Shown here piece after piece: positions 425 to 25,211 of a stretch of DNA of 64,000 bases. The DNA lies in the sequence record NC_025447.1. One strand, written 5' to 3'. The notes below the pieces were generated by a model. It saw nothing but the letters and a program-made list of their open reading frames with translations. It was not told where the DNA came from and did no database searches. Position 1 is the stretch's first letter. Each line of letters starts with the position of its first letter. The position numbers were made by a program, and so were the translations under genes.

Positions 425-1162
425 TTAGACTGAATTGTTAGGATAATATCTCCCACGTCCCCATATTATTCGCACAGCACCACCACCAGCAGCCGTATAA
501 GAAAAATTATCCCATATACTACCACCACCACCATACATCTTACCAGCACCACCACTACCAGCACCACCATTATATGAACCATCGTATCTACCGCCAATAC
601 CATTAGCACCTTGAACAATGATACCAGTACCACCACCCGTACCAATGAACGAGGTATTATAGAATGCACCACCACCACCGCCGCCGCCAGCACCATTTTC
701 ACCAGTGATTGCATCTCCGTTACCACCTTTACCAGTGTAGCCACCAGCACCACCACCAATGACTGCACCACCACTTACACCAGCGTTGCCCCCATTACCA
801 CCACCATCATTAATAGCGTTAGCAGCTTTCCCACCTAGTCCACCAACCCTATATTCACCAGTGAAGCTAACACATAGTTTTTCAGTTCCACGATATAAAC
901 CGTTTTCAACTGCTGTAGTAGTGTTGGGATGTGTAAGAGAAACACTTAAGTACTCACCACTAGTAACCGGAATATTATTACGCCACGATAAGCCGCCACC
1001 AGCACCACGTTGACCACCCGGCGAAATAACACATACTGATATTTCGGTAACGCCAGCAGGAACTGTAAATTGTGTTGTTCCTATTGTCGTGATTAATTGT
1101 TCACCATCTGGCTTATATTCAATTTTATTCCCGTACTTTACCATTCTTCCAAAAGGTAACAT
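425..1162 (-). CDS. Glycine-rich protein with MLPF leader, putative virion/tail-associated
   Basis: ATG after AGGAGG; MLPFGRMVKYGN start; many GGxG/GAGG runs; Gly-rich domains of this style are common in phage tail-associated proteins. Confidence 0.7.
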   Translation of the reverse strand: MLPFGRMVKYGNKIEYKPDGEQLITTIGTTQFTVPAGVTEISVCVISPGGQRGAGGGLSWRNNIPVTSGEYLSVSLTHPNTTTAVENGLYRGTEKLCVSFTGEYRVGGLGGKAANAINDGGGNGGNAGVSGGAVIGGGAGGYTGKGGNGDAITGENGAGGGGGGGAFYNTSFIGTGGGTGIIVQGANGIGGRYDGSYNGGAGSGGAGKMYGGGGSIWDNFSYTAAGGGAVRIIWGRGRYYPNNSV

Positions 1163-2495: not shown

Positions 2496-3635
2496 TTATT
2501 TCCACGGTAGAAGTGAATCAGGAACCCTTGTTGGTACAGTAGTTGAAGACATTCCAGTAAGATTGGGTACACCACATGTGTATAAATTATTATATTCGTC
2601 AACTAACATCGTATAAGAATAGCTCTTACAAAAACTACTAAGATTACTACCTTCTAATGCAGTAAGATCCATTTCAGCGAATGATGTTATATACATATCA
2701 GTTGTACCAATACCACATTGACCATTTGAATTAAGGCCACATGAAAATAACTTATTATTATTATTAATTATACAGGATGGTCCGGTAAGGTTTGTCCCAA
2801 GCTCACCCACCAACTCCACTTCTCCTTGGAATGATAAATTTGGAATTAATGTACTCATTGGGGCTACTGACCTATTTCCTGTACCTGCTTGTCCATAGTC
2901 GTTAATAGATGCAACTTTAACATTACCATCATTAAGAAATATATAAGAAGTTTCATTTGTATTGACTGCTTTAATTGCATTACTAATCGAAGTATCTTGT
3001 GTAAATGTGAGCAAGTTTTGTGTCGTCGTTCCTGATACAAACGTTCTACCTGCATACCAATATGAACCATCATTTAGTACTAATCCAGTACTATATATTG
3101 CACAACCAGCACTGATAACATTTTCTATTGTACTATAGGTGAATCGTGAAACGCTTGAAGTTGATCCATTCCCAAAAACACCACCAGTACCAGCACCACA
3201 GTAGAACCACTTTCCATTTTTTAAAAATACACGCATACACGAAGATATCACAACACTATCAATATCATCTGCACTGACACCGAAATCAGTAAAGTTCTGT
3301 GTTATATCAACCCAAACGCCGTTAGTGTTTGAAGATAGTATTGGAATAACAGTACGTCTACCAGTGTACCAAATAGTACCATCTTTCTTTATAGCAATTG
3401 TTCCTTGTACCCCACCCCAATATCGTGTAACATTTGAGTTGACAAGAGTCCATTCAGTTGAAGAGTCCAATGAACTATTACCACTTTGTCCATATGCTGA
3501 AGAACCAAACCAATATAGATTGCCATTTGTGTGTAAATAAAATTTGGCATCAGCAGAACATTGTAACCTGTTTTTAGGTAGAATCAGTTCAGGTGCGATA
3601 TTCCCGTACTTAACCATTCTTGCAAAAGGTAACAT
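2496..3635 (-). CDS. RCC1/BLIP-II-like repeat protein, MLPF-leader family
   Basis: Start corrected to MLPFARMVKYGN; motifs FGSSAYGQSGN, CGLNSNGQCGIG; paralog of 4890-6032. Confidence 0.8.
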   Translation of the reverse strand: MLPFARMVKYGNIAPELILPKNRLQCSADAKFYLHTNGNLYWFGSSAYGQSGNSSLDSSTEWTLVNSNVTRYWGGVQGTIAIKKDGTIWYTGRRTVIPILSSNTNGVWVDITQNFTDFGVSADDIDSVVISSCMRVFLKNGKWFYCGAGTGGVFGNGSTSSVSRFTYSTIENVISAGCAIYSTGLVLNDGSYWYAGRTFVSGTTTQNLLTFTQDTSISNAIKAVNTNETSYIFLNDGNVKVASINDYGQAGTGNRSVAPMSTLIPNLSFQGEVELVGELGTNLTGPSCIINNNNKLFSCGLNSNGQCGIGTTDMYITSFAEMDLTALEGSNLSSFCKSYSYTMLVDEYNNLYTCGVPNLTGMSSTTVPTRVPDSLLPWK

Positions 3636-13940: not shown

Positions 13941-14207
13941 ATGACTATTACATATTTTGCAACGCGTGAACTTGCTCGGATTGCCGCACGCCAGGACGGG
14001 GCGACGTTTAAAGATATGGGCGTACAATCTGAACGTGGTAAACGTTGGGCCGTAGTAAAGCAAAGTACAGCCCGATCAATTCAGTACTGGCGAGCGGCTT
14101 TAAAGCGTCCTGATAGTGTATCGCGTCGCGTGGTAGAAATAAAGCACGACCGCAAGGGCAATCGCGTTACCGTGTACCGTACTAAAAAGATTGCAGTACT
14201 TGAATAA
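13941..14207 (+). CDS. Early hypothetical basic protein, paralog of 25998-26393
   Basis: FATRE..R..AR..G.TFKDMG....G.RWAV and HDRKGNRVTVY shared. Confidence 0.8.
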   Translation: MTITYFATRELARIAARQDGATFKDMGVQSERGKRWAVVKQSTARSIQYWRAALKRPDSVSRRVVEIKHDRKGNRVTVYRTKKIAVLE

Positions 14208-14555: not shown

Positions 14556-14635
14556 TTGACTTATTTTGTCAGTACTGGCATAATGTATCTATTGAAACGA
14601 ACAATTTGGCCCACGGGGTGCGGGAGTGTATCTAT
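14556..14635 (+). ncRNA. Gene-less promoter unit with two-hairpin motif (copy c)
   Basis: TTGACT-17-CATAAT then ATTG-AAACGAA-CAAT and GGCCCACGGGGTGCGGGAGTGTATCTAT. Confidence 0.5.
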
Positions 14636-14728: not shown

Positions 14729-14810
14729 TACTTTTTTTTTACTATTCAGTACTGAAAACTATTTTTAAAAAGTACTTGCAAACTATGTTTAAAGGCGTAT
14801 AATGTTTTAC

Positions 14811-14885
14811 ATCAGGACGGGGAATGAAATAAGTAACTCCCTGTTAAGTAGTCCAGGAGTAAGACATACGAAAACCTCCCCTGAT
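14811..14885 (+). ncRNA. Candidate three-way-junction RNA between tandem promoters (copy 1)
   Basis: ATCAGG/CCTGAT, ACGGGGA/TCCCTGT and GGAG/CTCC stems; near-identical copy at 24783-24855. Confidence 0.5.
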
Positions 14886-14953
14886 AAAATAGTTTGACAA
14901 AGATTTATAAAAGCGTATAATACTTACATCAACTACTGAATGAGGGTTACAAA

Positions 14954-15565
14954 ATGAAAACTATCACTACTACTACTTTCGTTATGGCTTTTTCTGAACT
15001 GAACGCAGAACAACAAACGGCGGCTATCGAACTGGTTCGGGATCGGGAACGTGCAAGTGAGGATAATTTCTTTGCTGAGTCAGTACTGGAATACTATAAA
15101 GAAACAGTACTACCAGAATACGGCATAGATGAAGCTGAATTGCAATACAGTGGTTTTTGGTCGCAAGGTGACGGTGCATCAATCAGTACTGACCACGTTG
15201 ACGCTGAGAAGTTTTTACGCAAGGTTAAGGCGTTAACGAAATATCGTTCCATCCGTCACCTGTTGAACGAAGATGATTTGGAAATGAGTGTAGAACGTTC
15301 CCAATCGCGTTATGCACACGAAAACACGGTAGGCGGTTGCGTTGATACTCGCTACACTGATTTAACTGTAAAACAGGCGGCGTTAGCTGAGGAACTGGAA
15401 AATTTACTGACTGACACGATCCGAGAATTATCTTGTAAGCTGTACCGTGATTTAGAAAATGCTTATGAAGACCAGTTTACTACTGAAAACATTGTAGGAC
15501 TGATTGAGGGTAACGAATATCAATTTAATGTTATCGATGGTGTAGTAGAATCTATCGCATATTAA
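14954..15565 (+). CDS. Early hypothetical acidic protein (YSGFWSQGDGA motif)
   Basis: 203 aa ORF, GAGG RBS, own promoter. Confidence 0.8.
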   Translation: MKTITTTTFVMAFSELNAEQQTAAIELVRDRERASEDNFFAESVLEYYKETVLPEYGIDEAELQYSGFWSQGDGASISTDHVDAEKFLRKVKALTKYRSIRHLLNEDDLEMSVERSQSRYAHENTVGGCVDTRYTDLTVKQAALAEELENLLTDTIRELSCKLYRDLENAYEDQFTTENIVGLIEGNEYQFNVIDGVVESIAY

Positions 15566-15623
15566 TTCAGTACTGAATCACTGGCGGGGAATGGTTCCCG
15601 CCTATATCCCAGGAGTAAGAGAA

Positions 15624-15860
15624 ATGATCGAACAAATCAAAACTACAACGCCAAACGTAACGGGTACAGTATCACACTTCATTGGTGACGATTCGCGGGG
15701 CGTTCCTTATTGTGCAGTACATGTAAACAAAAATGGCGACTACTGGCTAACGGTTTACGGTTCTTATTCTTTCGGGCGTAGTGCACACCAAAAGATCCTG
15801 GATAAAGTACAACCAACGGGTAAAAATATCACCGCTGAGATGTTTTATAAAAAGCACTAA
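15624..15860 (+). CDS. Early hypothetical protein
   Basis: Start corrected to MIEQIK after AGGAG. Confidence 0.7.
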   Translation: MIEQIKTTTPNVTGTVSHFIGDDSRGVPYCAVHVNKNGDYWLTVYGSYSFGRSAHQKILDKVQPTGKNITAEMFYKKH

Positions 15861-15945
15861 AAAGTACTTGCAAAGTAATTAGATTAACGTATAATACTTT
15901 ATATCGAGAGCGGGAATAGTTCCCGCCTTTACTGAGGATTATCTA

Positions 15946-16230
15946 ATGGGTAAAGTAATTAACTATACAGTACTAAGCAAGTCATTATCTATTAGCCAGT
16001 GCACCGATGGTTTTTGGCTGTACGATGAAACGCGTGGCATGAATTTAGCTATGCAGGAGAAAACTACTGATGCGGCATATCTTAAAGCACTGGAATACTA
16101 CCAGAAGCGTTTAAAGGAAGTAGAAAACGATTATAATAACCTGAAAGCGAAAGTAGATCATTTCGTCGGTCAATTCATTGACGATGACGAGGACGGGCAC
16201 TACTGCGACCGTTGCGGATCTTACAATTGA
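15946..16230 (+). CDS. Early hypothetical protein with C-terminal CxxC
   Basis: GAGGA RBS; HYCDRCG end. Confidence 0.75.
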   Translation: MGKVINYTVLSKSLSISQCTDGFWLYDETRGMNLAMQEKTTDAAYLKALEYYQKRLKEVENDYNNLKAKVDHFVGQFIDDDEDGHYCDRCGSYN

Positions 16231-16247
16231 GTACTGAGGATTATCTA

Positions 16248-16451
16248 ATGAGTGATTTAATTAAACGTATCAAAGAGCTTGAAGAAAAAGAATTGCAGTT
16301 GATCGGGTTACGGAATAAAGTATTCCATGATTTAGGTGGCTTCATTAATGCCTGGGATAGTGGCGATCCTGATGCGTTACCTGCTAACCGCCAGGCGATG
16401 ATCAATGATGTGCGTGGTGTCTTTGATTATGTTTTAAAGCAATTAAATTAA
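16248..16451 (+). CDS. Early hypothetical protein
   Basis: Start corrected to MSDLIK; same ACTGAGGATTATCTAATG start context as 15946. Confidence 0.75.
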   Translation: MSDLIKRIKELEEKELQLIGLRNKVFHDLGGFINAWDSGDPDALPANRQAMINDVRGVFDYVLKQLN

Positions 16452-16537
16452 AAAAGTACTTGCAATTAGTTTTCAGTACTGTATAATAGTTTACATCAAG
16501 GGGGAAATGGTTCTCCCCACTAATAAGGAGTTTTACA

Positions 16538-16759
16538 ATGGCTAATATCACTACTCTTTCCCAGCTTGAAGCACTGGTTAAATCTATGCGGGAACATGCC
16601 GACAATATCGGCGTAGAAGATCCGGCTGTATGTTTTTGCGACGAAATAAATGATGATACGCTCGTCATTGCAGAAGTACAAGACGTTTCTAACTATTCAT
16701 CGCGTTACACTGGCGGCGTAGCAAAGAAAGGTGATTTTTGTTTATATCTTACTAAGTAA
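16538..16759 (+). CDS. Early hypothetical protein
   Basis: TAAGGAG RBS, own cassette. Confidence 0.75.
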   Translation: MANITTLSQLEALVKSMREHADNIGVEDPAVCFCDEINDDTLVIAEVQDVSNYSSRYTGGVAKKGDFCLYLTK

Positions 16760-16766
16760 TAACCAG

Positions 16767-16792
16767 GGGGATCAAACGATCCCCTTTATTTT
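16767..16792 (+). terminator. Intrinsic terminator
   Basis: GGGGATC-AAAC-GATCCCC-TTTATTTT. Confidence 0.75.
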
Positions 16793-16823
16793 GCAGTACT
16801 GAATCATTTAATAGACGGATCTA

Positions 16824-16893
16824 TGCACCCTGTGGGTTAGTGACTATCTCGTCTTTATGTAGGTATTATGCCAGTACTGGATGCAGTTGTCAA
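16824..16893 (-). ncRNA. Gene-less promoter unit with two-hairpin motif (copy e)
   Basis: TTGACA-17-CATAAT then GAC-GAGATA-GTC-ACTAACCCACAGGGTGC. Confidence 0.5.
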
Positions 16894-17005
16894 GACTTTT
16901 TTTTCAAATACTTTTATATTAAAGTACTTGATAATAGTTTTTAAACGCGTATAATGTTTTACATCTAATCGGGAATACTCCCTAGTACTAACAAAGGATA
17001 TACAA

Positions 17006-17305
17006 ATGAAAACTGCAATCATCGCCCTGGCTTTATCTGTTTCCTCTTTCGCTGTTAACGCTTCCGTTGATGTACAGAAAGAAAAATTCATTCAGTGCAC
17101 TGTTGCAATGACTAACGAGGAAACGGCTGAGATCGTTACCAAATCCCTGGAACTGGCCCCTGCAATGTTTGCTAATGGCCCGTACCATGAAGAAGATGAT
17201 CAGGGTAGCACGACCATCTATTACGATGCAAAAAGTAAACGCGGTTCTGTCACTGTAATGGATACAGAGAAAGTTACATTCACTGGCGTAATTAATTGTT
17301 TATAA
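17006..17305 (+). CDS. Early protein with Sec signal peptide
   Basis: MKTAIIALALSVSSFAVNA cleavage-like N-terminus; AAGGA RBS. Confidence 0.75.
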   Translation: MKTAIIALALSVSSFAVNASVDVQKEKFIQCTVAMTNEETAEIVTKSLELAPAMFANGPYHEEDDQGSTTIYYDAKSKRGSVTVMDTEKVTFTGVINCL

Positions 17306-17322
17306 TATAGTACTGAATCACT

Positions 17323-17350
17323 AGCCCACTATAAGGAGTGGGCTTTTTTT
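17323..17350 (+). terminator. Intrinsic terminator
   Basis: AGCCCAC-loop-GTGGGCT-TTTTTT. Confidence 0.85.
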
Positions 17351-17543
17351 ATTGTAGGATTGTAGTACTGGTATACTTTGAAAATAGTTTTAAAAAAGTA
17401 GTTGACATTACCAGGGAAAAGCGTAGAATGTATTACATCAAGACGGGGAACATTAAGTAGACCGCCAGTAAGTCGAATGAAAAACTGGACACGTCAAACA
17501 AACTTTGATAAACTAACTTAAACTTTAATTGAGGATTTATAAA

Positions 17544-18026
17544 ATGGCTAATGTAAAATCATTTCTGAAAGCACTGATTTCTAACGATACTGTCATTGCT
17601 GCTGAATTGCTGGCTGACCTGGATAATGATACCATGAAAGCAGTACGCAACAATTTTAACATTGCTTACAGTGAAGCGAAAGAACTACAAGCCAAAAAGG
17701 TAGCAGAACTGGAAGAACAGAAAAAAGCCCGTGAAGCAGAACTGCAAGCAACAATAGAAAGTATTCAGGCGGCGGTGTCTGGTTTAGATCTGGAAGTGGT
17801 TATTGAAATGGCACATAAAGCCCTGGCGGTTAAGTACGGTGAAGATAAGCCGGAATCTAAGCCTAAAAAATGGATTCAAGAACGTGTTACGGTTGTCCTT
17901 GATAACGGGGAAGAACATTTGATTCCTGTACGCGGTAACTGCATTGCGGTAGTACTGGATGCTATCAAAGAAAGCGGTATGACTCGCGAGGAATGGATCG
18001 AATCTCACCGCAAAATTGAAGCATAA
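17544..18026 (+). CDS. H-NS/StpA-like protein with divergent DNA-binding motif
   Basis: Start corrected to MANVKS. Charged coiled-coil N-half; C-terminus VVLDNGEEHLIPVRGNCIAVVLDAIKESGMTREEWI aligns by eye with H-NS [36 protein letters not shown]. Confidence 0.6.
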   Translation: MANVKSFLKALISNDTVIAAELLADLDNDTMKAVRNNFNIAYSEAKELQAKKVAELEEQKKAREAELQATIESIQAAVSGLDLEVVIEMAHKALAVKYGEDKPESKPKKWIQERVTVVLDNGEEHLIPVRGNCIAVVLDAIKESGMTREEWIESHRKIEA

Positions 18027-18047
18027 CATTTAAAGTACTGAATCACT

Positions 18048-18073
18048 AGCCCACTTATACAGTGGGCTTTTTT
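18048..18073 (+). terminator. Intrinsic terminator
   Basis: AGCCCACT-TATAC-AGTGGGCT-TTTTT. Confidence 0.85.
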
Positions 18074-18300
18074 GTGTCTATAGTATTCCATGCCGTCAGC
18101 ACCTCATAGAATCGATTCTAACGCATTAAACTGATTATCTGATGCATCGCCCTAGCTGGTGGAGTTAAGGCCGTTAGAATGCGATTGAGAGCGTTTAAAG
18201 TATTTTGCAAAAAGTAATAAAAAGTACTTGCACGATTCAGAGATTAGCGTATAATGTTTTACATCAAGGCGAAACACCTTAACTAACTGAGGATATAAAG

Positions 18301-18453
18301 ATGAATACTTATGAACTGGATTGTTTCACGTTACAAGTAATGTCAGTATGCAGCAAGAAAGATTGGTCATCAAAGGAATTTAAAGCAGTTATTGCGTGTG
18401 CAAAACACGGCAAGACTATCAATGAAACGGCATCAATCATTGATAAACTTTAA
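18301..18453 (+). CDS. Small early protein (50 aa, not in track)
   Basis: GAGGA RBS, own promoter; MNTYELDCF...; resembles 22156-22299. Confidence 0.65.
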   Translation: MNTYELDCFTLQVMSVCSKKDWSSKEFKAVIACAKHGKTINETASIIDKL

Positions 18454-18522
18454 AAAATAGTTTGACAATAGTTTTAAGTACTGTATAATATTTTACATCA
18501 ACTACTGAGAAGGATTTAAAAA

Positions 18523-18750
18523 ATGGCTATCATCATCACTTACGTATCTGGCACTACTGGCACTTCTAGCACTGTTGCAGTACTGACCAACAAGAAAGGT
18601 GCGGAACTTCATTCTGCAATGAATACCTGGGCGGTGAATGAGTTCGGTCAGTGGGCTAGTGTAGAATACATTGAAACCTATCAAGTGCCGTCTATTAGCT
18701 TAACTGATTTAGGTGTAGATCGTATCCTTTGCCTGGATGAATTAAACTAA
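18523..18750 (+). CDS. Early hypothetical protein
   Basis: AAGGA RBS, own promoter. Confidence 0.75.
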   Translation: MAIIITYVSGTTGTSSTVAVLTNKKGAELHSAMNTWAVNEFGQWASVEYIETYQVPSISLTDLGVDRILCLDELN

Positions 18751-18835
18751 AAAGTACTTGCAAAGTAAATCGGATAAAGTATAATACATTACATCAAGGG
18801 GAGAAATGATTCTCCCCACTAAGAGGAAACTAAAA

Positions 18836-18979
18836 ATGAAAACTTGTCAATGTGGTAAAAAATCTATCACTGGTTTGAAACGGGGCGTTGCTCTTTGTCA
18901 GTATCACTATAACGCTCAAGTATGGGGTAAAGAGTGGGCAGACCAGGTGGAAGCTGTAAAGAAAGCAAAAAGTAAGTAA
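18836..18979 (+). CDS. Small early Cys-containing protein (47 aa, not in track)
   Basis: GAGGA RBS, own cassette; MKTCQCGKK...LCQYH. Confidence 0.65.
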   Translation: MKTCQCGKKSITGLKRGVALCQYHYNAQVWGKEWADQVEAVKKAKSK

Positions 18980-19060
18980 AATTATTATCACAGTACTATT
19001 GACATAGTTTGATAGTACTGGCATAATAGATTTTATCAAGACAACTAAGAGGAAACAATA

Positions 19061-19273
19061 ATGGCTATCATTACTAAAATCAAAGTTAACAAATCACTGG
19101 TTAAACTTGAACAAGTGAAAGCAGGTTATAAAGTATCGTGGTGCGGTATGTATCGGATGTTCACCGATATAGACAATGCAATCAAGTACTACACTGACAC
19201 CGTTGCCTCATTCGTTCGTTCTGATGTAGTACTGGCAGTACATGCACATAAAGCAGCGAAAGAAAGTAAGTAA
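19061..19273 (+). CDS. Early hypothetical protein, similar to 21877-22056
   Basis: GAGGA RBS; MAII start and Y.VS.....(F/Y)...D.A...Y pattern shared. Confidence 0.75.
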   Translation: MAIITKIKVNKSLVKLEQVKAGYKVSWCGMYRMFTDIDNAIKYYTDTVASFVRSDVVLAVHAHKAAKESK

Positions 19274-19364
19274 AAATATTATCACAGTACTATTGATATA
19301 GTTTGATAGTACTGGCATAATAGATTTTATCAAGACAACACATATTAATTTAAGGAATACTAAA

Positions 19365-19688
19365 ATGGCTAAAACTATCATCAACACCGTTTCCCTGGCT
19401 GCAATCCGTGCAATCAATGTTGACGGTAAACGTTGGACTGATTCATATGGCAATACTTATCATTCTTGTCATGTAAGCGTCGAACTGGATAACGGTTTGA
19501 ATGATCTGGCGGTTGAATCATTTACTTATGGCTATGAAGATGCATATCAACAAACGGCGTTATCTCTCTTAAAGGAATCAGTAGACGGGCTTAATACTGA
19601 TGAAACCTCCCTTACTCGTTTGTGCAATGATCTTAATATCCCGTTGCATTGTACTGTACAGAATGTTAAACGCAAAAAAGATCTTTAA
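19365..19688 (+). CDS. Early hypothetical protein, paralog of 25575-25898
   Basis: RWTDS(Y/H)GNTYHSC, FTYGY and VKRKKD shared. Confidence 0.8.
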   Translation: MAKTIINTVSLAAIRAINVDGKRWTDSYGNTYHSCHVSVELDNGLNDLAVESFTYGYEDAYQQTALSLLKESVDGLNTDETSLTRLCNDLNIPLHCTVQNVKRKKDL

Positions 19689-19768
19689 TTAGCTTTACTT
19701 TATGCAGATACTTTTATATAGTGTCTGCATAGGGGAAAGAAATTAAATTAACTTAAGAGGATCGTATA

Positions 19769-20038
19769 ATGAAAAATATCAGTACTTTAATCGATGCAGG
19801 TACACATGTTCGTCGGTCAATGGTTGCAACCAGTACTACAAAACAAGTAGCAAGCGGTTATCTTGTATTTGTACACGAAGGAAAGCTATTGGAACGTTCA
19901 ATCAATTTTGATGTTAAAAACAATTGCCGTTTTATTATTTTTAAGCGTGAACAATATAAAATTGATTTGCCAGCAAAGCCCATAAGCGGGGCGTACAACG
20001 TGCAATCATTGTTTGAGCGTCAACCATACACCTATTAA
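19769..20038 (+). CDS. Early hypothetical protein
   Basis: GAGGA RBS. Confidence 0.7.
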   Translation: MKNISTLIDAGTHVRRSMVATSTTKQVASGYLVFVHEGKLLERSINFDVKNNCRFIIFKREQYKIDLPAKPISGAYNVQSLFERQPYTY

Positions 20039-20089
20039 TCAAAACATCGTTAGCGGTCGATTTAGGCCGCTTATATTGGGGATTATACC

Positions 20090-20260
20090 ATGAACGTTAA
20101 TCAAGTACTGAATGAAGTTGAAAGCATCATTAAACCAATGAAACGTATTGATGCTGTTCCTACACCGGAAGAATGCCGCCTTTATGAGCGTTACAGTGTG
20201 GAACAAGCCCAGGAAATGGCCCGTATCCGTCCGGTTGCCAGTACTGATAAGGCGGCGTAA
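20090..20260 (+). CDS. Small hypothetical protein (56 aa, not in track)
   Basis: GGGGA RBS; MNVNQVLNEV... Confidence 0.6.
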   Translation: MNVNQVLNEVESIIKPMKRIDAVPTPEECRLYERYSVEQAQEMARIRPVASTDKAA

Positions 20261-20261
20261 T

Positions 20262-20471
20262 ATGCTTACTGTACAGGATAAGATCGACATCTTAAAGGTT
20301 AATATGTATGTGATTGATGCAGATCCTGAAAAAGTATTTGCATACGATGATTCTAATCGTAGTCCTTTTTATTGTAGTCATGTAGTTGGATACGTGCCGT
20401 TAGGGTATGTTATCGAAAGAGTGGTTGATGAAGCATACAAACATTTTTTAGAAAATAATACTTGCAATTAG
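20262..20471 (+). CDS. Early hypothetical protein
   Basis: Start corrected to MLTVQD, directly after upstream stop. Confidence 0.6.
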   Translation: MLTVQDKIDILKVNMYVIDADPEKVFAYDDSNRSPFYCSHVVGYVPLGYVIERVVDEAYKHFLENNTCN

Positions 20472-20538
20472 TTTTCAGTACTGTATAATTGTTTACATAG
20501 AGGGGGGAATGGTTCTCCCCGATACTAGGAGAATCAAA

Positions 20539-20691
20539 ATGAAACAATACAACGCTCGGTTTGATGTTACTATCGGCAACGGCAAAGGTCAATTTTCTTT
20601 CAGTACTCGTAGGAGTTATACAGAAAACTTCCTGCGTAATTGTGCACTGACCGCCGCACAAATTAAACATTACTTTCAGGCTAAAAAATGA
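20539..20691 (+). CDS. Small early protein
   Basis: Start corrected to MKQYN after AGGAG. Confidence 0.7.
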   Translation: MKQYNARFDVTIGNGKGQFSFSTRRSYTENFLRNCALTAAQIKHYFQAKK

Positions 20692-20777
20692 AATCATTGG
20701 CTTATTACAGTTCGGCCCTGGTCGGTGCATTGATCGCGGCATTGTTAGTAACTTATCTATTCTTTATGGTGATTTAA
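20688..20777 (+). CDS. 29 aa single-TM peptide
   Basis: ATGA overlap; SALVGALIAALLVTYLFFMVI. Confidence 0.5.
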   Translation: MKSLAYYSSALVGALIAALLVTYLFFMVI

Positions 20778-20915
20778 ATGAATCCTAACGGTTTAATTTA
20801 CAGTACTCCTAAAACGAAAGCAGATAAAGCGAAAGCACGTAAAGCGAAAGTAAAGCAGTACATCAAGCAAGGCATGACACGCAAAGCGGCATTGCTTAAA
20901 GCTAAAAATAAATGA
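20778..20915 (+). CDS. 45 aa Lys/Ala-rich basic peptide
   Basis: GGTGA RBS; MNPNGLIYSTPKTKADKAKARKAKVKQYIKQGMTRKAALLKAKNK. Confidence 0.55.
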   Translation: MNPNGLIYSTPKTKADKAKARKAKVKQYIKQGMTRKAALLKAKNK

Positions 20916-21005
20916 AAAAAGTGGTTGACTTCGGTCAGCCATTTTGCTATTATATATTCATTGAGAGATAGCTCACTAGCCCACAGGGTGCAGGAGTGTA
21001 TCTAT
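20914..21005 (+). ncRNA. Terminator-overlapped promoter plus two-hairpin motif (copy f)
   Basis: GTGGTTGAC-TTCG-GTCAGCCAT-TTT; TTGACT-17-TATTAT; TGAG-AGATAG-CTCA; CTAGCCCACAGGGTGC. Confidence 0.5.
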
Positions 21006-21138
21006 TGTATAATGATTGAGTACTGAAAACTATTTTAAAGTATTTGATAAAAAGTACTTGCAAACTATCTCAATGAGCGTATAATGTTTTATATCGCAAG
21101 GGGAAACGGTTTCCTCTCCAAATAAAAGGAATACCAAA

Positions 21139-21477
21139 ATGATCTCTATCGCTCAATCTAACTTTGAAAACGAAATCATCGCTCAGGCACTGCGTTTAAA
21201 TGATGGTCGGGCCGAAATCAATTACGGTTTCAATAGTGGTGGATGTGAAAAATATCAGTACTTTGTAACGGCTGATGGCTGTGTCCTGGGTATCAATACA
21301 GTTATTGTAAACATTCAGAAAATTAATTTCAATGATCCAGACGATAGCCAGTTTTACATCACGGGCGTAGACGTGAACTATGAGGATGACTCACTAACTG
21401 ATGATCACACTGGCGAGAAGTTAGAAAGTGCATACGGTGAAGATGATTATCAGTCAGTACCAGAAGATTTTGAATAA
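21139..21477 (+). CDS. Early acidic hypothetical protein
   Basis: AAGGA RBS, own cassette. Confidence 0.75.
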   Translation: MISIAQSNFENEIIAQALRLNDGRAEINYGFNSGGCEKYQYFVTADGCVLGINTVIVNIQKINFNDPDDSQFYITGVDVNYEDDSLTDDHTGEKLESAYGEDDYQSVPEDFE

Positions 21478-21572
21478 TATTAAAAAATAGTTTGACAATA
21501 GTTTTTAGTACTGTATAATTAATTACATCAAGGGGAGAATAGTTCTCCCCACTAACAGAGAGAGAAAACAAA

Positions 21573-21785
21573 ATGGCTAATATCCGCACTGTACTGAAAA
21601 ATGCAAAACAAGTTTTATTTTCTGATCATGAAAATTTCAACAAGGATATCACTGGCGTTCGGAATATCAAAGATGTAAAAAATGTTATGGGTATCTATTG
21701 CAATATGAAACGTGTTGGCACGTTCGGCGATAAAGTACTATACCAGGCAGGGGATTACAATTTTACACTGACTATCATTAACTAA
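21573..21785 (+). CDS. Early hypothetical protein
   Basis: Own cassette. Confidence 0.7.
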   Translation: MANIRTVLKNAKQVLFSDHENFNKDITGVRNIKDVKNVMGIYCNMKRVGTFGDKVLYQAGDYNFTLTIIN

Positions 21786-21876
21786 AAATATTATCACAGT
21801 ACTATTGACAACGTTTGATAGTACTGGCATAATAACTTTTATCAAGACAACGCATATTAATTTAAGGAATACTAAA

Positions 21877-22056
21877 ATGGCTATTATCGCAAAAACTGAA
21901 ATCATCGGCCTGGATTCTATCATCATGACGTTTGAAGATCAAAAAGGGATGTATGTAGTTTCCTATGGTGATTATGTTCGGGAGTATGAAACAGTAGACG
22001 AAGCCTTTGAAAGTTACATTCGCCAGGTTAATAAAGCATACGACGATTACCGCTAA
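21877..22056 (+). CDS. Early hypothetical protein
   Basis: Start corrected to MAIIAK after TAAGGA. Confidence 0.7.
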   Translation: MAIIAKTEIIGLDSIIMTFEDQKGMYVVSYGDYVREYETVDEAFESYIRQVNKAYDDYR

Positions 22057-22155
22057 AATATATTACCAGTACTATTAAATCTATTGACAATGTTTGATAG
22101 TACTGTATAATAAGTTTTATAAACAGTAGTTAACTTAACCTAAGAGAGAAAAATC

Positions 22156-22299
22156 ATGACAGCATTAGATTCATTCATCGACGCAGTACTGGCAAAAACT
22201 GGCGAGGATCTGACCGCAGAACAATACGCGATGATCGAACAATGTCAGCAAGACGGTAAATCGGTGAAAGATACTGTTAAGATTATCCGCAAGATGTAA
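22156..22299 (+). CDS. Small early protein (47 aa, not in track)
   Basis: Own promoter; MTALDSFIDAVL...GKSVKDTVKIIRKM; followed by AGCCCAC..GTGGGCT hairpin. Confidence 0.65.
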   Translation: MTALDSFIDAVLAKTGEDLTAEQYAMIEQCQQDGKSVKDTVKIIRKM

Positions 22300-22404
22300 G
22301 ATTATAGCCCACTGGTTAACGCTGGTGGGCTTTAATCATTTACCCTATACAATGCCAGTACTAAACCGTTTAACTCGTTAGAATGCGTTACAGGACGTTT
22401 AACA

Positions 22405-22602
22405 ATGATTAGCATGAAATCAGTACAAAAACAAATAGAAACATTATCAAAAATTAAACGTAAACAGTACTCATTAGAATATACAATCAATGGTAACTAT
22501 CATCTAATGAAAGAAAATAATTTTATAGTCATTGATGAATCATTGCAGATCATTAGTATAGTACTGAAAGCATTAATCAATGACAGAAAAAAGTTAAAAT
22601 AA
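22405..22602 (+). CDS. Hypothetical protein
   Basis: 65 aa ORF, weak RBS. Confidence 0.5.
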   Translation: MISMKSVQKQIETLSKIKRKQYSLEYTINGNYHLMKENNFIVIDESLQIISIVLKALINDRKKLK

Positions 22603-22606
22603 TCTA

Positions 22607-22690
22607 TTGACAATATTATCCAGTACTGGCATAATACTTACATCAAGACGAGAACGTCACTAACCCATAGGGTGCACAAATGTAACTATA
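22607..22690 (+). ncRNA. Gene-less promoter unit with two-hairpin motif (copy g)
   Basis: TTGACA-17-CATAAT; GAC-GAGAAC-GTC-ACTAACCCATAGGGTGC. Confidence 0.5.
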
Positions 22691-22785
22691 TAATATCGAT
22701 CAATAAATGATCAAAAAAGTACTGGATCAATTTAGCATAAGGCGTATAATTCTGATCAAATCTTGATCAAAGGCAATAAACGTAG

Positions 22786-22932
22786 TTGAAATTATATAGA
22801 AAGTACAAAGGCGTTACCATTCGTGGTAATGCTGGGGAATATGTAGTATCATACGGTTTGAATAAAATCAGTACTAGTAGTATTATTGTAGCATTACAGT
22901 ACTATAGTATTTTTATAATGAGGTTAAAATAA
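22786..22932 (+). CDS. Possible 48 aa protein (TTG start)
   Basis: YVVSYG shared with 21877; stop overlaps next ATG (TAATG). Confidence 0.4.
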   Translation: MKLYRKYKGVTIRGNAGEYVVSYGLNKISTSSIIVALQYYSIFIMRLK

Positions 22933-23189
22933 TGGCTGTTGGATTCGCGAAGGACGGGGCCGAGCAAGACGAGATTAACGCAGTGATTCAGGCCGCTGTA
23001 AACCACGCTAGAACGCAAATTAACGCACAAATAGAATCACTGATACATTGCCTCGACTGCGGCGATAAAATCCCTGAGAATCGCCGCCTGGCCGTTAAGG
23101 GGTGTAAGTACTGCATCACTTGCCAGGCTGATCATGATAGCATATTCAAACGCAATCCCCGTAATTGTTGGCATAGATCTATGAGATAA
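22932..23189 (+). CDS. DksA/TraR C4 zinc-finger protein, YbiI-like
   Basis: CLDCGDKIPENRRLAVKGCKYCITCQ; N-terminus MAVGFAKDGA..DEIN resembles E. coli YbiI MASGWANDDA..EQIN. Confidence 0.85.
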   Translation: MAVGFAKDGAEQDEINAVIQAAVNHARTQINAQIESLIHCLDCGDKIPENRRLAVKGCKYCITCQADHDSIFKRNPRNCWHRSMR

Positions 23190-23252
23190 AAAGTATTGAC
23201 AGTACTGTTAGTTAGTGTATAATATTTTATATCTTAACTGAGGATTGAAATC

Positions 23253-23609
23253 ATGGGTATACAACATATCACGCGTACTACAGACAATGGTGAGATCACT
23301 GGCTATCAAGTACAAGGCAAAGTAGCACAATTGCAGTACTGGTTTGTTAAACGTGGCATTGTTGCACCGGATCTTGATTATGATCGTGTAGCGTTTATTG
23401 ATTCTCTTTATGTTGATCCCGATAATCGCGGTAACGGTGAAGGTACTGAGTTAATGAATGCCTTTATTGATGCCGCCGATGATTCAGATTGTATCATCTT
23501 AGAATGCGATACTGGAGAAGATAACGAGTTTAATCTTAAAGAATGGTATGAAGGTTTTGGATTTGAAGTACTGATTAACTGCGAATATCCTATAATGATT
23601 TTATCCTAG
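23253..23609 (+). CDS. GNAT-family N-acetyltransferase
   Basis: Motif A IDSLYVDPDNRGNGEGTELM; motif B LKEWYEGFGF. Confidence 0.8.
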   Translation: MGIQHITRTTDNGEITGYQVQGKVAQLQYWFVKRGIVAPDLDYDRVAFIDSLYVDPDNRGNGEGTELMNAFIDAADDSDCIILECDTGEDNEFNLKEWYEGFGFEVLINCEYPIMILS

Positions 23610-23688
23610 TACTTGCAATTAGTTTTAAGTACTGTATAATAGTTTACATGAAGGGGAGAATAGTTCTCCCCACTACAAGGAAAGACAA

Positions 23689-23877
23689 ATGCAAAACTTA
23701 TCAAGTATTTTAGTACAAGATGATTTCGGTAATCCTGGAAGTGCTATCATCGTTCGGGGCAATAAGGCAACGTTTGTTATTGCTGGTGGACCTGTACAGC
23801 GTAGCATTAAAAACAATGCAGTTACAATCAATAATGTTCGCTATCGCTTAGATAAAGAATTGATTCATAAACTTTAA
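23689..23877 (+). CDS. Early hypothetical protein
   Basis: Own cassette, AAGGA RBS. Confidence 0.7.
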   Translation: MQNLSSILVQDDFGNPGSAIIVRGNKATFVIAGGPVQRSIKNNAVTINNVRYRLDKELIHKL

Positions 23878-23962
23878 AAAAGTATTTGACAAAGCATTGT
23901 AGTACTGTATAATAGTTTACATGAAGGGGAGAAATGATTCTCCCCACTAAGAGGAAAGAAAC

Positions 23963-24175
23963 ATGCAAGGTCAACTAATCGTTCGTAAATGGTCTGATAC
24001 TAACGAAAAACCGTGGGATGTTCAATATATCGGACCGGACGGTGTTTCACGTTATCAACCTGGCGTAACGCATAGTACTGAGCAATATGCCGCCGCTCAC
24101 CGCGAACGCCTGTTAGAATCTATGAAACAGGGATTCTGTGAAAAATTCATTCAAGATCATTGGCTGAAAGATTAA
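23963..24175 (+). CDS. Early hypothetical protein
   Basis: Own cassette, GAGGA RBS. Confidence 0.75.
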   Translation: MQGQLIVRKWSDTNEKPWDVQYIGPDGVSRYQPGVTHSTEQYAAAHRERLLESMKQGFCEKFIQDHWLKD

Positions 24176-24194
24176 TATATAAGGAGTACAGCTT

Positions 24195-24287
24195 ATGCAA
24201 ATGAATCCGATGATTGTTGTGTTAGCTGTACTTATGATCATTCATGCCATCGTAGAAGTACTAACACAATCAGGAGTAATACAATGA
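24195..24287 (+). CDS. 30 aa hydrophobic peptide
   Basis: AAGGAG RBS; MIVVLAVLMIIHAIVEVL. Confidence 0.55.
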   Translation: MQMNPMIVVLAVLMIIHAIVEVLTQSGVIQ

Positions 24288-24454
24288 TCCAAGTAGAATT
24301 ATCAGTACTGAAAGATCTGTTTTATCGGTTAGGCACTACTGGCGAATACCCTAAAGGGGATACTGCTAAACTATACATTGCATTGGATGTATGGCAACGT
24401 AATGAACTGGCTAACGCCTGGCGTAAAGGTAAATCAGAGGGGATTGCAGCATGA
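24284..24454 (+). CDS. Small hypothetical protein (56 aa)
   Basis: AGGAG RBS, ATGA overlap. Confidence 0.6.
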   Translation: MIQVELSVLKDLFYRLGTTGEYPKGDTAKLYIALDVWQRNELANAWRKGKSEGIAA

Positions 24455-24600
24455 AAGAATTTTTATTCGAAGTAGTGTTCCAGGGCGTAGGAAGTAACCA
24501 ACTGATTCGATCAAGTGGTTACAATGTTAACCAGGCATGGAATAACATTAAACAAATGTACCCGAACGCTATCACATATCGCAACCCAAAACAAGTTTAA
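24451..24600 (+). CDS. Small hypothetical protein (49 aa)
   Basis: GAGG RBS, ATGA overlap. Confidence 0.55.
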   Translation: MKEFLFEVVFQGVGSNQLIRSSGYNVNQAWNNIKQMYPNAITYRNPKQV

Positions 24601-24609
24601 AAAGAATAA

Positions 24610-24700
24610 AAAAAGGGATTGACTCCGGTCAGTCCCTTTGCTATTATATACGCATAGACAAAAACTAGCCCACAGGGTGCATAAATGTATCTATTATATG
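24610..24700 (+). ncRNA. Terminator-overlapped promoter plus motif (copy h)
   Basis: AAAGGGATTGAC-TCCG-GTCAGTCCCTTT; TTGACT-17-TATTAT; CTAGCCCACAGGGTGC. Confidence 0.5.
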
Positions 24701-24782
24701 CTGGTGGCTAGTACTATCAAGTACTGAAAACTATTTTTAAAAAGTACTTGCATTGTACTTAGAATCAAGTATAATGTTTTAC

Positions 24783-24855
24783 ATCAGGACGGGGAACGAA
24801 ACAAGTAACCCCGTTAAGTAGTCCAGGAGTAAGACATACGAAAACCTCCCCTGAT
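24783..24855 (+). ncRNA. Candidate three-way-junction RNA (copy 2)
   Basis: Near-identical to 14811-14885; variable arm keeps ACGGGG/CCCCGT pairing. Confidence 0.5.
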
Positions 24856-24921
24856 AAAATAGTTTGACAATAGAAATTAAACAAGTATAATACTTACATC
24901 AACCACAAAGAGGAATACAAA

Positions 24922-25122
24922 ATGAAACATTTTACTTTCGGTGTAGTAGGCTTTACAGTATCCAGCGGCGTTTATAAATCAGAACGCGGTGCTAAAAATG
25001 CAGCAAGTCGGGCGTATGGTTCACAGCGTGACTTACAGGTCGGTTATATTAGTAACATTAATAACATGTTTATTCCTGTTTCACAGCGTAAAGCGGGTAA
25101 CATGAAATGGGAAACAATTTGA
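24922..25122 (+). CDS. Early hypothetical protein
   Basis: GAGGA RBS, own promoter. Confidence 0.75.
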   Translation: MKHFTFGVVGFTVSSGVYKSERGAKNAASRAYGSQRDLQVGYISNINNMFIPVSQRKAGNMKWETI

Positions 25123-25211
25123 TAAAATAGTTTGACAATAGTTTTTAGTACTGTATAATATTTTACATCAAGTGGGGAATAGTTCCCCACCTAACAAAGA
25201 GAGAAATTAAA

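Follow-up and report, generated by a model that had tools for sequence, protein, structure and literature searches.

Sequence comparison indicates that three intergenic repeats of Escherichia phage 121Q (Asteriusvirus), a giant E. coli phage, are genuine copies of one small knotted RNA read from the + strand, and that its pseudoknot is present in ~500 phage genomes besides 121Q. The leader pseudoknot family appears to be undescribed in Rfam and in the literature searched.

Copies of the leader RNA in phage 121Q

We analysed a window of 64,000 nucleotides from the 121Q genome (NC_025447.1). The initial annotation had placed three structured repeats in it, and a sequence check, together with motif and model R1 searches, located all three exactly there, on the + strand (Table 1). 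The joint motif TTAAGTAG-N-CC-N2-6-AGTAAG has three matches in the window, which are the three repeats, with 0 expected from 100 shuffles. Across the whole 348,532-bp genome, model R1 returned just these three matches at 52–54 bits each, the next scoring 15 bits. All of the stems named for the copies were recovered (ATCAGG/CCTGAT, ACGGGG/CCC(C/T)GT and GGAG/CTCC in copies 1 and 2; ATCAAG/TTTGAT, GACG/CGTC and CCAGT/ACTGG in copy 3) and, as had been observed, the differences between copies 1 and 2, which include a 2-nt indel, sit in the second hairpin, where pairing is held via a G-U pair.

Every copy begins ~7 nt past a sigma70-type −10 box. From this 7-nt spacing we infer the 121Q transcription start sites, with transcription itself predicted from promoter consensus. 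The tandem promoters described around copies 1 and 2 are present as promoter-like sites, the downstream one having perfect consensus in both cases. P1 of copy 2 is absent from the consensus scan list because its −35 box matches at 3/6 positions only; an A/T-rich stretch precedes it. Copy 3 has no second promoter, and its predicted transcript continues into gene 277 (17544–18026). The gene downstream of copy 3 that had been called H-NS-like shows no sequence similarity to H-NS.

Table 1. Features of the three leader RNA copies in phage 121Q (window coordinates).
Feature	Position	Strand	Details
Promoter P1, copy 1	14776..14803	+	TTGCAA-16-TATAAT, consensus scan; predicted start A 14811; same cassette upstream of copy 2
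Copy 1 leader RNA	14811..14885	+	model R1, 52.5 bits
Copy 1 outer stem	14811-14816/14880-14885	+	
Copy 1 hairpin	14817-14823/14838-14844	+	one G-U pair
Copy 1 pseudoknot core	14845-14879	+	
Copy 1 S1	14851-14853 with 14863-14865	+	GUC/GAC
Copy 1 S2	14856-14859 with 14876-14879	+	GGAG/CUCC
Copy 1 A-rich loop	14866-14875	+	
Promoter P2, copy 1	14894..14921	+	TTGACA-16-TATAAT, 12/12; predicted to drive gene 271 (14954-15565)
Promoter, copy 3	17402..17429	+	TTGACA-16-TAGAAT, consensus scan; predicted start A 17437
Copy 3 leader RNA	17437..17509	+	model R1, 53.6 bits
Copy 3 outer stem	17437-17442/17504-17509	+	
Copy 3 GACG/CGUC stem	17442-17445/17492-17495	+	
Copy 3 pseudoknot core	17454-17488	+	
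Copy 3 S1	17460-17462 with 17472-17474	+	GAC/GUC
Copy 3 S2	17465-17469 with 17484-17488	+	CCAGU/ACUGG
Promoter P1, copy 2	24748..24775	+	TTGCAT-16-TATAAT, by eye and alignment to copy 1 P1; predicted start A 24783
Copy 2 leader RNA	24783..24855	+	model R1, 54 bits
Copy 2 outer stem	24783-24788/24850-24855	+	
Copy 2 hairpin	24789-24794/24809-24814	+	
Copy 2 pseudoknot core	24815-24849	+	
Copy 2 S1	24821-24823 with 24833-24835	+	GUC/GAC
Copy 2 S2	24826-24829 with 24846-24849	+	GGAG/CUCC
Promoter P2, copy 2	24864..24891	+	12/12, consensus scan; predicted to drive gene 301 (24922-25122)

The Rfam search that the initial annotation had proposed matched no known family: the Rfam 15 covariance models gave 0 matches at the gathering cut-off in the window, and noise only at E up to 10 around copies 1 and 3 and at E up to 5 on the T7 leader. 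Several other identities were rejected. ARAGORN predicted 0 genes in the window, which discounts a tRNA, tmRNA or tRNA-like element; a small ORF would have its ATG inside the −10 box and be shifted in frame by the indel between copies 1 and 2; and blastn of copy 2 against 5,426 E. coli genomes, as for a mimic of a host RNA, found no match. Resemblances seen by eye to CsrA sites (GGA motifs), a RegB site (GGAG), CRISPR repeats and −10-like pause elements were set aside, as neither copy 3 nor T7 retains the motifs. The literature search found no description of the T7/121Q pseudoknot element; the T7 sequence string is present in three papers, in one of which it is printed only within a construct.

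Fold and covariation of the core

Folded singly, the copies have energies that do not stand out (z −1.1 to −2.2), and the case for structure is therefore based on comparing phages rather than on thermodynamics. This comparison showed the predicted fold of the core to be an H-type pseudoknot. The conserved core (~42 nt) reads (U)AAGUAG-N-C, 1–2 nt, the S2 5′ strand, (A)UAA, G-N′-C, NNANGAAAA(N) and the S2 3′ strand, with 20 positions invariant across the family; the motifs AAGUAG-N-C ... UAAG-N′-C ... A-N-GAAAA are present in all three 121Q copies. Helix S1 pairs G-N-C with G-N′-C, and its middle pair is A-U in 22 sequences, U-A in 5 and C-G in 4, a three-state compensatory pattern. Helix S2, the third stem of the initial annotation, occurs as GGAG/CUCC, CCAGU/ACUGG, CCUG/CAGG or CUUG/CAAG, with three pairs altered on both sides. 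Both helices are paired in all three 121Q copies, with compensatory variation, and they meet at invariant pairs (C-G of S1 and G-C of S2), where the invariant UAA and the A-rich loop are also placed.

Over 32 distinct sequences, pairing holds in 99.6% of cells and covariation scores 0.497, compared with 0.099 in shuffles (0/500 reach 0.497) and at most 0.124 with slid partners. RNAalifold recovers S2 unaided, and a profile with the covarying columns masked returns the same 34 sequences with a clean E-value gap. G-U pairs are seen on the + strand only, which places the pairing in RNA, not DNA. A mutual-information scan of the core for further tertiary covariation found the S1 and S2 pairs alone above lineage signal.

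Covariation between phages (in round figures, 0.50 against 0.10 in shuffles) thus supports the structured + strand RNA with covarying stems and invariant motifs that had been proposed, and the leader does look like an aptamer or protein-binding RNA. The earlier three-way junction holds for its named stems but does not fully describe the fold, as the TTAAGTAG-NC part pairs with the TAAG-N′C of the third-stem loop, a loop of 14–16 nt that is partly paired into the pseudoknot. By the same pairing, the motifs described as conserved and unpaired are indeed conserved, but some of them are paired and form S1. GGGGAA, listed among the unpaired motifs, is paired in copies 1 and 2 and belongs to a 5′ hairpin theme common on early leaders of these phages, and is therefore not a family-wide invariant. 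In 121Q an outer stem wraps the core, and in copies 1 and 2 a hairpin precedes it. These two elements are accessory: the outer stem is missing from T7-type members, and copy 3 lacks a local second hairpin. The pre-core hairpin of T7-type members shows compensatory changes when read by eye, the ungapped alignment mixing two registers.

Occurrence among phages

The core is also found in T7, between the annotated E. coli promoters A1 and A2, of which A1 is experimentally established. In the T7 leader it starts ~50 nt from the 5′ end, behind other hairpins. The T7 version occurs in 485 phage records (Autographiviridae), one copy each, at ~270–700 bp where listed coordinates start at the genome left end, and the 121Q version occurs in 45 records. 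The core is present in all Asteriusvirus relatives found, in some Vequintavirinae and Justusliebigvirus phages, and in an Erwinia jumbo phage. Within the 121Q group the copies are 84–95% identical and move together with their promoters; relatives with terminal repeats carry six copies per virion genome.

Promoter, pseudoknot, then a second full promoter is the usual layout in T7-type phages, Asteriusvirus, Vequintavirinae, Justusliebigvirus and the Erwinia phage, the second promoter being missing from copy 3 and from some relatives. Placement is always promoter-proximal, and the downstream genes vary, with no common function; the 121Q copies lie no more than ~100 nt past a host-type early promoter, on the strand predicted to be transcribed. 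Other early leaders of these phages often carry simple 5′ hairpins.

In IMG/VR, a first pattern (TTAAGTAG..AGTAAG) matched 113 stretches, all by chance, and a second, core-based pattern found family members. A strict core pattern gave 13 matches in 185,579 species genomes, approximately the chance number by estimate, one of which is a family member on a 2.7-kb MAG contig. No family member was found in bacterial chromosomes save for two weak matches in Rac and e14, cryptic prophages of E. coli K-12; both matches directly follow the early-left promoter, where lambda has nutL. Model R1 found no match in HK022 (searched to E up to 5), lambda, P22, HK97, T5, rV5 or RaK2, and noise only in T4.

Possible roles of the pseudoknot

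Our best guess, held with low confidence and guided by analogy, is a leader that binds a host factor and acts in cis on host RNA polymerase. Host sigma70 RNA polymerase would make the RNA as the first ~75 nt of transcripts from early promoters, which probably lie in the part of the genome that forms the terminal repeat in relatives. The invariant junction would be a binding site for a host component conserved across Enterobacterales, and the nascent RNA would act on its own transcribing polymerase, sustaining processive early transcription through protection from Rho or pausing, as likened to HK022 put RNA and to the boxA leaders of rrn operons and lambda. A cis role is favoured by the presence of three copies only, each immediately behind a promoter, by the variety of downstream genes, by the lack of a terminator-type expression platform and by the nutL-like position of the weak Rac and e14 matches. 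Within 700 nt downstream, 25 family matches have an rrn-type boxA (0.007 expected), which is just 18–24 nt away in two contigs. Near the pseudoknot, boxA occurs in T7-type members only and, against a cis role, none (GCUCUUUAACAA-like, up to 2 mismatches) was found near any 121Q copy. In T7 the early terminator TE works and the A2 and A3 transcripts are without the element, so that any antitermination would be neither general nor essential. In most phages the second strong promoter would also let downstream genes be expressed without the pseudoknot, an arrangement that suits no less well an RNA whose production is an end in itself and which acts in trans.

The put RNAs of HK022 (putL and putR), the model for the cis mechanism, are also short structured RNAs just past early promoters used by host RNA polymerase, with no protein-coding role and no classic expression platform. 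They are, however, two stem-loops of dissimilar sequence rather than a pseudoknot, without a match when R1 was run against the HK022 sequence only, and they suppress intrinsic terminators, an activity that the early terminator of T7 speaks against in the present family. The lambda nut and rrn boxA-boxB leaders are likewise promoter-proximal, and many T7-type members have an rrn-type boxA in the same leader. The invariant GAAAA beside a stem recalls the boxB loop of nutR, although lambda boxB, the binding site of N, is a hairpin of 5 bp closed by a pentaloop, and the 121Q copies without boxA, as well as the lack of R1 matches in lambda and P22, also distinguish the family from nut-type leaders.

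A decoy or sponge acting in trans, itself only a tentative proposal, is ranked nearly as likely as the cis leader. The promoter-pseudoknot unit would, within the first minutes, produce large amounts of an aptamer that titrates out or inhibits a host protein, perhaps an RNA-binding regulator, a nuclease or a defence component, and read-through into genes would be incidental. The usual layout favours this, since the second full promoter makes the genes independent of the first, as do the copy numbers in 121Q and its terminal-repeat relatives, the recurrence of the cassette before different genes in unrelated phages, and the RNase III cut at R0.3 in T7, which frees the A1 leader as a separate RNA. 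However, neither a terminator nor a known processing site closes the 121Q RNAs, the second promoter is missing from copy 3 and from some relatives, and there is no known partner, nor any look-alike host RNA by model outside Rac and e14. We consider it unlikely that the element is a passive 5′ structure that guards the end from RppH or RNase E, or insulates the leader, with no specific ligand. The 121Q outer stem begins at about nt 1–3 of the predicted transcript and simple hairpins are frequent on other early leaders, but a stabiliser would not need 20 invariant loop and junction nucleotides across distant phage families, and the T7 core has other hairpins ahead of it.

An operator for a phage-encoded early protein, serving autoregulation or shut-off as do the T4 gene 32 leader pseudoknot or RegA sites, is quite unlikely. 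Invariant purine motifs, single-stranded and set on covarying stems, are a typical feature of protein operators, the element is confined to phages, and the gene 32 element, which lies in the 5′ leader of a phage early mRNA, is likewise a compact H-type pseudoknot and is recognised by a protein. That element is, however, tied to one gene and its own product, whereas the present family precedes many unrelated genes and has no match in T4. Its 20 invariant positions are common to T7-type podoviruses and 350-kb myoviruses, for which we know of no shared early protein, and it is placed far ahead of ribosome-binding sites, from which a promoter often separates it. A riboswitch aptamer that responds, as infection begins, to a metabolite or signal of the host is improbable. 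The preQ1-I, SAM-II and guanidine-III aptamers (34–50 nt) offer an analogy in size, H-type topology, A-rich third loop and invariant nucleotides at the helix junction, but the family matches none of them by sequence or covariance model (nor any Rfam riboswitch, even at E up to 10), has neither an expression platform of the terminator or ribosome-binding-site type nor a link to metabolic genes, and precedes genes without a common function. That there is no RNA function at all, the repeats being a DNA-level signal or a hitch-hiker on a mobile promoter cassette through recent transfer, is highly improbable. The identity of the 121Q-group copies and their travel with promoters would suit it, but covariation already disfavours it: compensatory changes are repeated in separate lineages, G-U pairs suit + strand RNA only, and the core is kept from T7 to jumbo phages while flanks and stems have diverged. 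The PeSL (promoter-early stem-loop) cassettes of T4-type phages are also repeated mobile modules of promoter and structure between small early genes; in these, a terminator-like stem-loop precedes the promoter and a role as recombination substrate has been proposed, whereas here the structure is a conserved pseudoknot downstream of its promoter and under RNA-level constraint.

The RNA is present in unrelated enteric phages and in each case belongs to the earliest transcripts, which suggests that they have a host target in common. A plausible though tentative reading is that it represents a new aptamer class, carried on the very first host-made transcripts of very different virulent enterobacterial phages and capturing one conserved host component. 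The phages concerned are T7-type podoviruses, rV5- and phi92-type myoviruses and 350-kb jumbo phages, and candidate components are RNA polymerase or a Nus factor, a ribonuclease or a defence protein. Few viruses have been studied as closely as T7, and transcription biochemists use its A1 promoter as a standard tool, yet the A1–A2 pseudoknot appears undescribed in Rfam and in the literature searched. Annotators could use the pseudoknot as a marker of immediate-early promoters and of the leading genome end. If the aptamer reading is true, the element would be an RNA-only takeover step that precedes any phage protein and was overlooked even in T7, and the pseudoknot may thus reveal a new RNA-level step in host takeover or elongation control.

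The three copies in 121Q

The three sequences singled out in the initial annotation are present in the 121Q window together with the stems named for them, and all three are intergenic. A joint motif matches just these three copies in the window, with 0 matches expected by chance, and both the pattern and the covariance model return the same three only from the whole 121Q genome (52–54 bits; next best, 15 bits). Their folding energies are unremarkable alone (z −1.1 to −2.2). Megablast assigned the window to Escherichia phage 121Q (Asteriusvirus), whose record is 348,532 bp in length; window positions equal record positions minus 124,000. Coordinates of all features are collected in the table below.

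The surrounding region contains small early genes in a row on one strand, of which nearly all are listed as hypothetical proteins. A sigma70-type promoter of its own precedes almost every one of them, and several are followed by intrinsic terminators. A −10 box lies ~7 nt before each copy, reading TATAAT at copies 1 and 2 and TAGAAT at copy 3, and the predicted 121Q start sites are placed from promoter spacing. About 9 nt after copies 1 and 2 is a perfect TTGACA-16-TATAAT promoter, serving genes 271 and 301, and copy 3 runs straight into gene 277. Upstream of copies 1 and 2 there is also a promoter with no ORF, whose transcript would contain GCCCAC(N)GGGUGC, so that the units are stacked as promoter–RNA, promoter–pseudoknot and promoter–gene. 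At ordinary early promoters, the mRNA begins with ACAUCAAG followed by a simple G(N)GGGAAUAGUUCCC(N)C-type hairpin, and the ACGGGG...CCCCGU hairpin of copies 1 and 2 looks like an expanded form of this common early 5′ hairpin.

The gene downstream of copy 3, gene 277, had been described as H-NS-like, a reading that sequence comparison did not bear out: its product has no H-NS match among solved structures or in Pfam, where the best E-value was 0.02 and the hits were to unrelated families, all under the cut-off. By sequence, the product comprises a charged middle part, which is probably helical, and a small C-terminal part.

Coordinates of the pseudoknot copies and associated features
Feature	Sequence	Position	Strand	Detail
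Copy 1	121Q window	14811-14885	+	
Copy 2	121Q window	24783-24855	+	
Copy 3	121Q window	17437-17509	+	
Gene 277	121Q window	17544-18026		
ORF-less promoter before copy 1	121Q window	14556-14621		TTGACT-17-CATAAT; motif 14609-14621
ORF-less promoter before copy 2	121Q window	24619-24680		TTGACT-17-TATTAT; motif 24668-24680
Leader with simple hairpin	121Q window	25132-25190		ACAUCAAG
Leader with simple hairpin	sequence L117	3090-3150		ACAUCAAG
Leader with simple hairpin	EmilieFrey (L115)	3085-3150		ACAUCAAG
Leader with simple hairpin	sequence L125	500-545		ACAUCAAG
Core with S1 mismatch	EmilieFrey (L115)	3034-3076		C-A
Segment with three-copy early block in terminal repeat	G17 (L118)	1-21350		
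Defective copy	CMSTMSU (L119)	14036-14075		
Exact boxA	T7 (L127)	433-445		GCTCTTTAACAA
Exact boxA	sequence L170	4166-4177		GCTCTTTAACAA
Rac match (L272)	E. coli K-12	1419512-1419556	-	23.4 bits; between racR and ydaG
e14 match (L273)	E. coli K-12	1202119-1202157	-	16.2 bits; between ymfK and ymfJ

A covarying pseudoknot core

The initial annotation proposed a three-way junction carrying conserved unpaired motifs. For copies 1 and 2 that proposal describes the fold fairly, but the part that defines the family is a pseudoknot, and some of the motifs taken to be unpaired are paired within it. An alignment of 34 core sequences contains 20 invariant columns and two covarying helices. Helix S2, the third stem of the earlier proposal, occurs as GGAG/CUCC, CCAG/CUGG, CCUG/CAGG or CUUG/CAAG and is recovered by RNAalifold unaided; outside the 121Q group it has a fifth pair, which is G-U, G-C, A-U or U-A. 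Helix S1 consists of three pairs, formed by the G-N-C after AAGUA with the G-N′-C after UAA, and because this partner lies inside the S2 loop the fold is an H-type pseudoknot.

Across the 32 distinct rows, 99.6% of cells are paired and the covariation score is 0.497, compared with 0.099 ± 0.025 for shuffled alignments, none of 500 shuffles reaching the observed value. When the pairing partner was slid, the score was at most 0.124. At the middle S1 position, 22 of the 32 rows have A-U, five have U-A, four have C-G and one is mismatched. The U-A state is found in 121Q-type copies and one T7-type contig, and C-G in phages G17, muut and outra and in LIMEzero-like contigs; since both alternatives to A-U are spread over more than one phage group, the changes look independent, as judged from phage groups rather than from a tree. 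The sole mismatch at this pair in the family, C-A, belongs to EmilieFrey, whose close relatives muut and outra have C-G.

Our first IMG/VR selection required pairing and was repeated blind, using an nhmmer profile in which every covarying column was masked. This gave 61 matches (E at most 3e-5) clear of noise (E at least 3e-3), comprising the same 34 distinct sequences plus one damaged copy from an UNVERIFIED record. G-U pairs, present in S2, the 121Q hairpin and the copy-3 outer stem, are consistent with the + strand alone, which places the constraint on RNA, not DNA.

The outer stem is confined to myovirus versions, and comparison of the copy types shows one G-C pair exchanged for A-U and one for G-U. 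The pre-core hairpin changes only to G-U in the 121Q group; in T7-type members a hairpin at its position shows compensatory changes by eye (for example CCGG/CCGG, CCAG/CUGG, CCAC/GUGG and CGGG/CCCG). Copy-3-type members are different in that the 5′ strand finds its partner downstream of the core (GACG/CGUC, or GACGG/CCGUC in LTH01).

Rfam returned no match in the window at gathering cut-offs, nor when E-values were relaxed for the T7 leader and the surroundings of copies 1 and 3. A tRNA identity was rejected for the window copies, as was an ORF reading, no conserved ORF being present in the element. No E. coli chromosomal look-alike was found by blastn, and a strict pattern applied to one genome per prokaryote species gave roughly the estimated chance number plus one T7-like contig. 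We consider the RNA family to be real and strongly supported, and it is apparently undescribed in the literature searched.

Relatives in phages and possible relatives in prophages

In T7 the core occupies the interval separating A1 from A2, both annotated as E. coli promoters, starting ~52 nt past the A1 start and ending 2 nt before the A2 −35 box. The T7 copy is the sole family member known to lie behind an experimentally established promoter, the annotated A1. The T7 version was found by blastn in 485 phage records at one site each, ~270–700 bp from the genome left end where listed coordinates run from that end; carriers include T7, T3, phiA1122 and Kayfunavirus, and many phages of Klebsiella, Salmonella, Yersinia, Serratia, Pantoea and Aeromonas. 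Scanning IMG/VR with the core pattern added more T7-type contigs as well as other contexts, among them a 366-kb jumbo contig and a group resembling LIMEzero.

The copy-1 type (84–100% identity) is present in 45 phage records by blastn and the copy-3 type in 38, 36 of which are from the 121Q group. Beyond Asteriusvirus, the copy-1 type occurs in unrelated 137–147-kb myoviruses, namely Justusliebigvirus (EmilieFrey, muut, outra) and Vequintavirinae (A73, W70, A7_1, A5-4), where the promoter–element–promoter layout is kept and the downstream genes are different. Diverged copies in the Erwinia jumbo phage Hallingskeid, the Vequintavirinae phage LTH01 and EJP2 were matched by the copy-3 query. The CMSTMSU copy is without the S2 5′ strand and one C of the 3′ side; as this record is UNVERIFIED and sparsely annotated, errors in sequencing are a likelier cause than natural breakage.

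G17 and vB_Ec-M-J were sequenced with physical ends, and their copies fall within the direct terminal repeat, hence twice per genome. In these relatives the repeat holds the whole three-copy early block (H53 and H94 in vB_Ec-M-J), and its length is estimated at ~22 kb from the difference between the G17 and 121Q records. The 121Q record is probably permuted and without the repeat, which would bring the virion genome to six copies.

In E. coli K-12 (NC_000913), the family model gave two weak matches only, both in cryptic lambdoid prophages (Rac and e14). Each is flanked by the repressor gene on one side and the first early-left gene on the other, just past a sigma70-type early-left promoter, a place that is occupied in lambda by nutL. 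In the Rac type, UAAGUAGCCAGCC is retained and S1 may form as GCC/GGC, with mixed support for S2; the type is conserved in ~12 temperate phages. These elements are possible distant relatives of the family. No match was returned in T5, rV5, RaK2, lambda, HK022, P22 or HK97, and T4 gave noise only.

Genomic setting and possible function

The element is always promoter-proximal, on predicted host-polymerase transcripts from the genome end or terminal repeat, with a second promoter ≤40 nt downstream in most members. The genes that follow differ between phages, encoding Ocr in T7 and various small proteins of unknown function in others, and no terminator or ribosome-binding-site platform was found with the element. 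An rrn-type boxA lies ≤700 nt downstream in 25 of the 61 family matches, Autographiviridae-type, compared with 0.007 expected; two IMG/VR contigs, relatives of Pantoea phage LIMEzero, have it just 18–24 nt past the pseudoknot, and it is absent near every 121Q-type copy. In T7-type early leaders the boxA downstream of the pseudoknot is exact, GCTCTTTAACAA, as in T7 and L170. Invariant nucleotides are concentrated at the two-helix junction and the A-rich loop, clustered as they are in aptamers.

Covariation all but excludes a repeat that acts at DNA level or has no function. Our first choice, tentatively held, is that the pseudoknot would act in cis on the elongating polymerase; slightly less probable is an RNA made for its own sake and acting in trans, and the clues do not decide between the two. 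Less likely than either are a riboswitch, a passive structure that stabilises the transcript at its 5′ end and an operator bound by a phage protein. Considered as a whole, the position, the variable genes, the second promoter, the boxA and the junction invariants fit an element that would serve as a binding site for a conserved host component.
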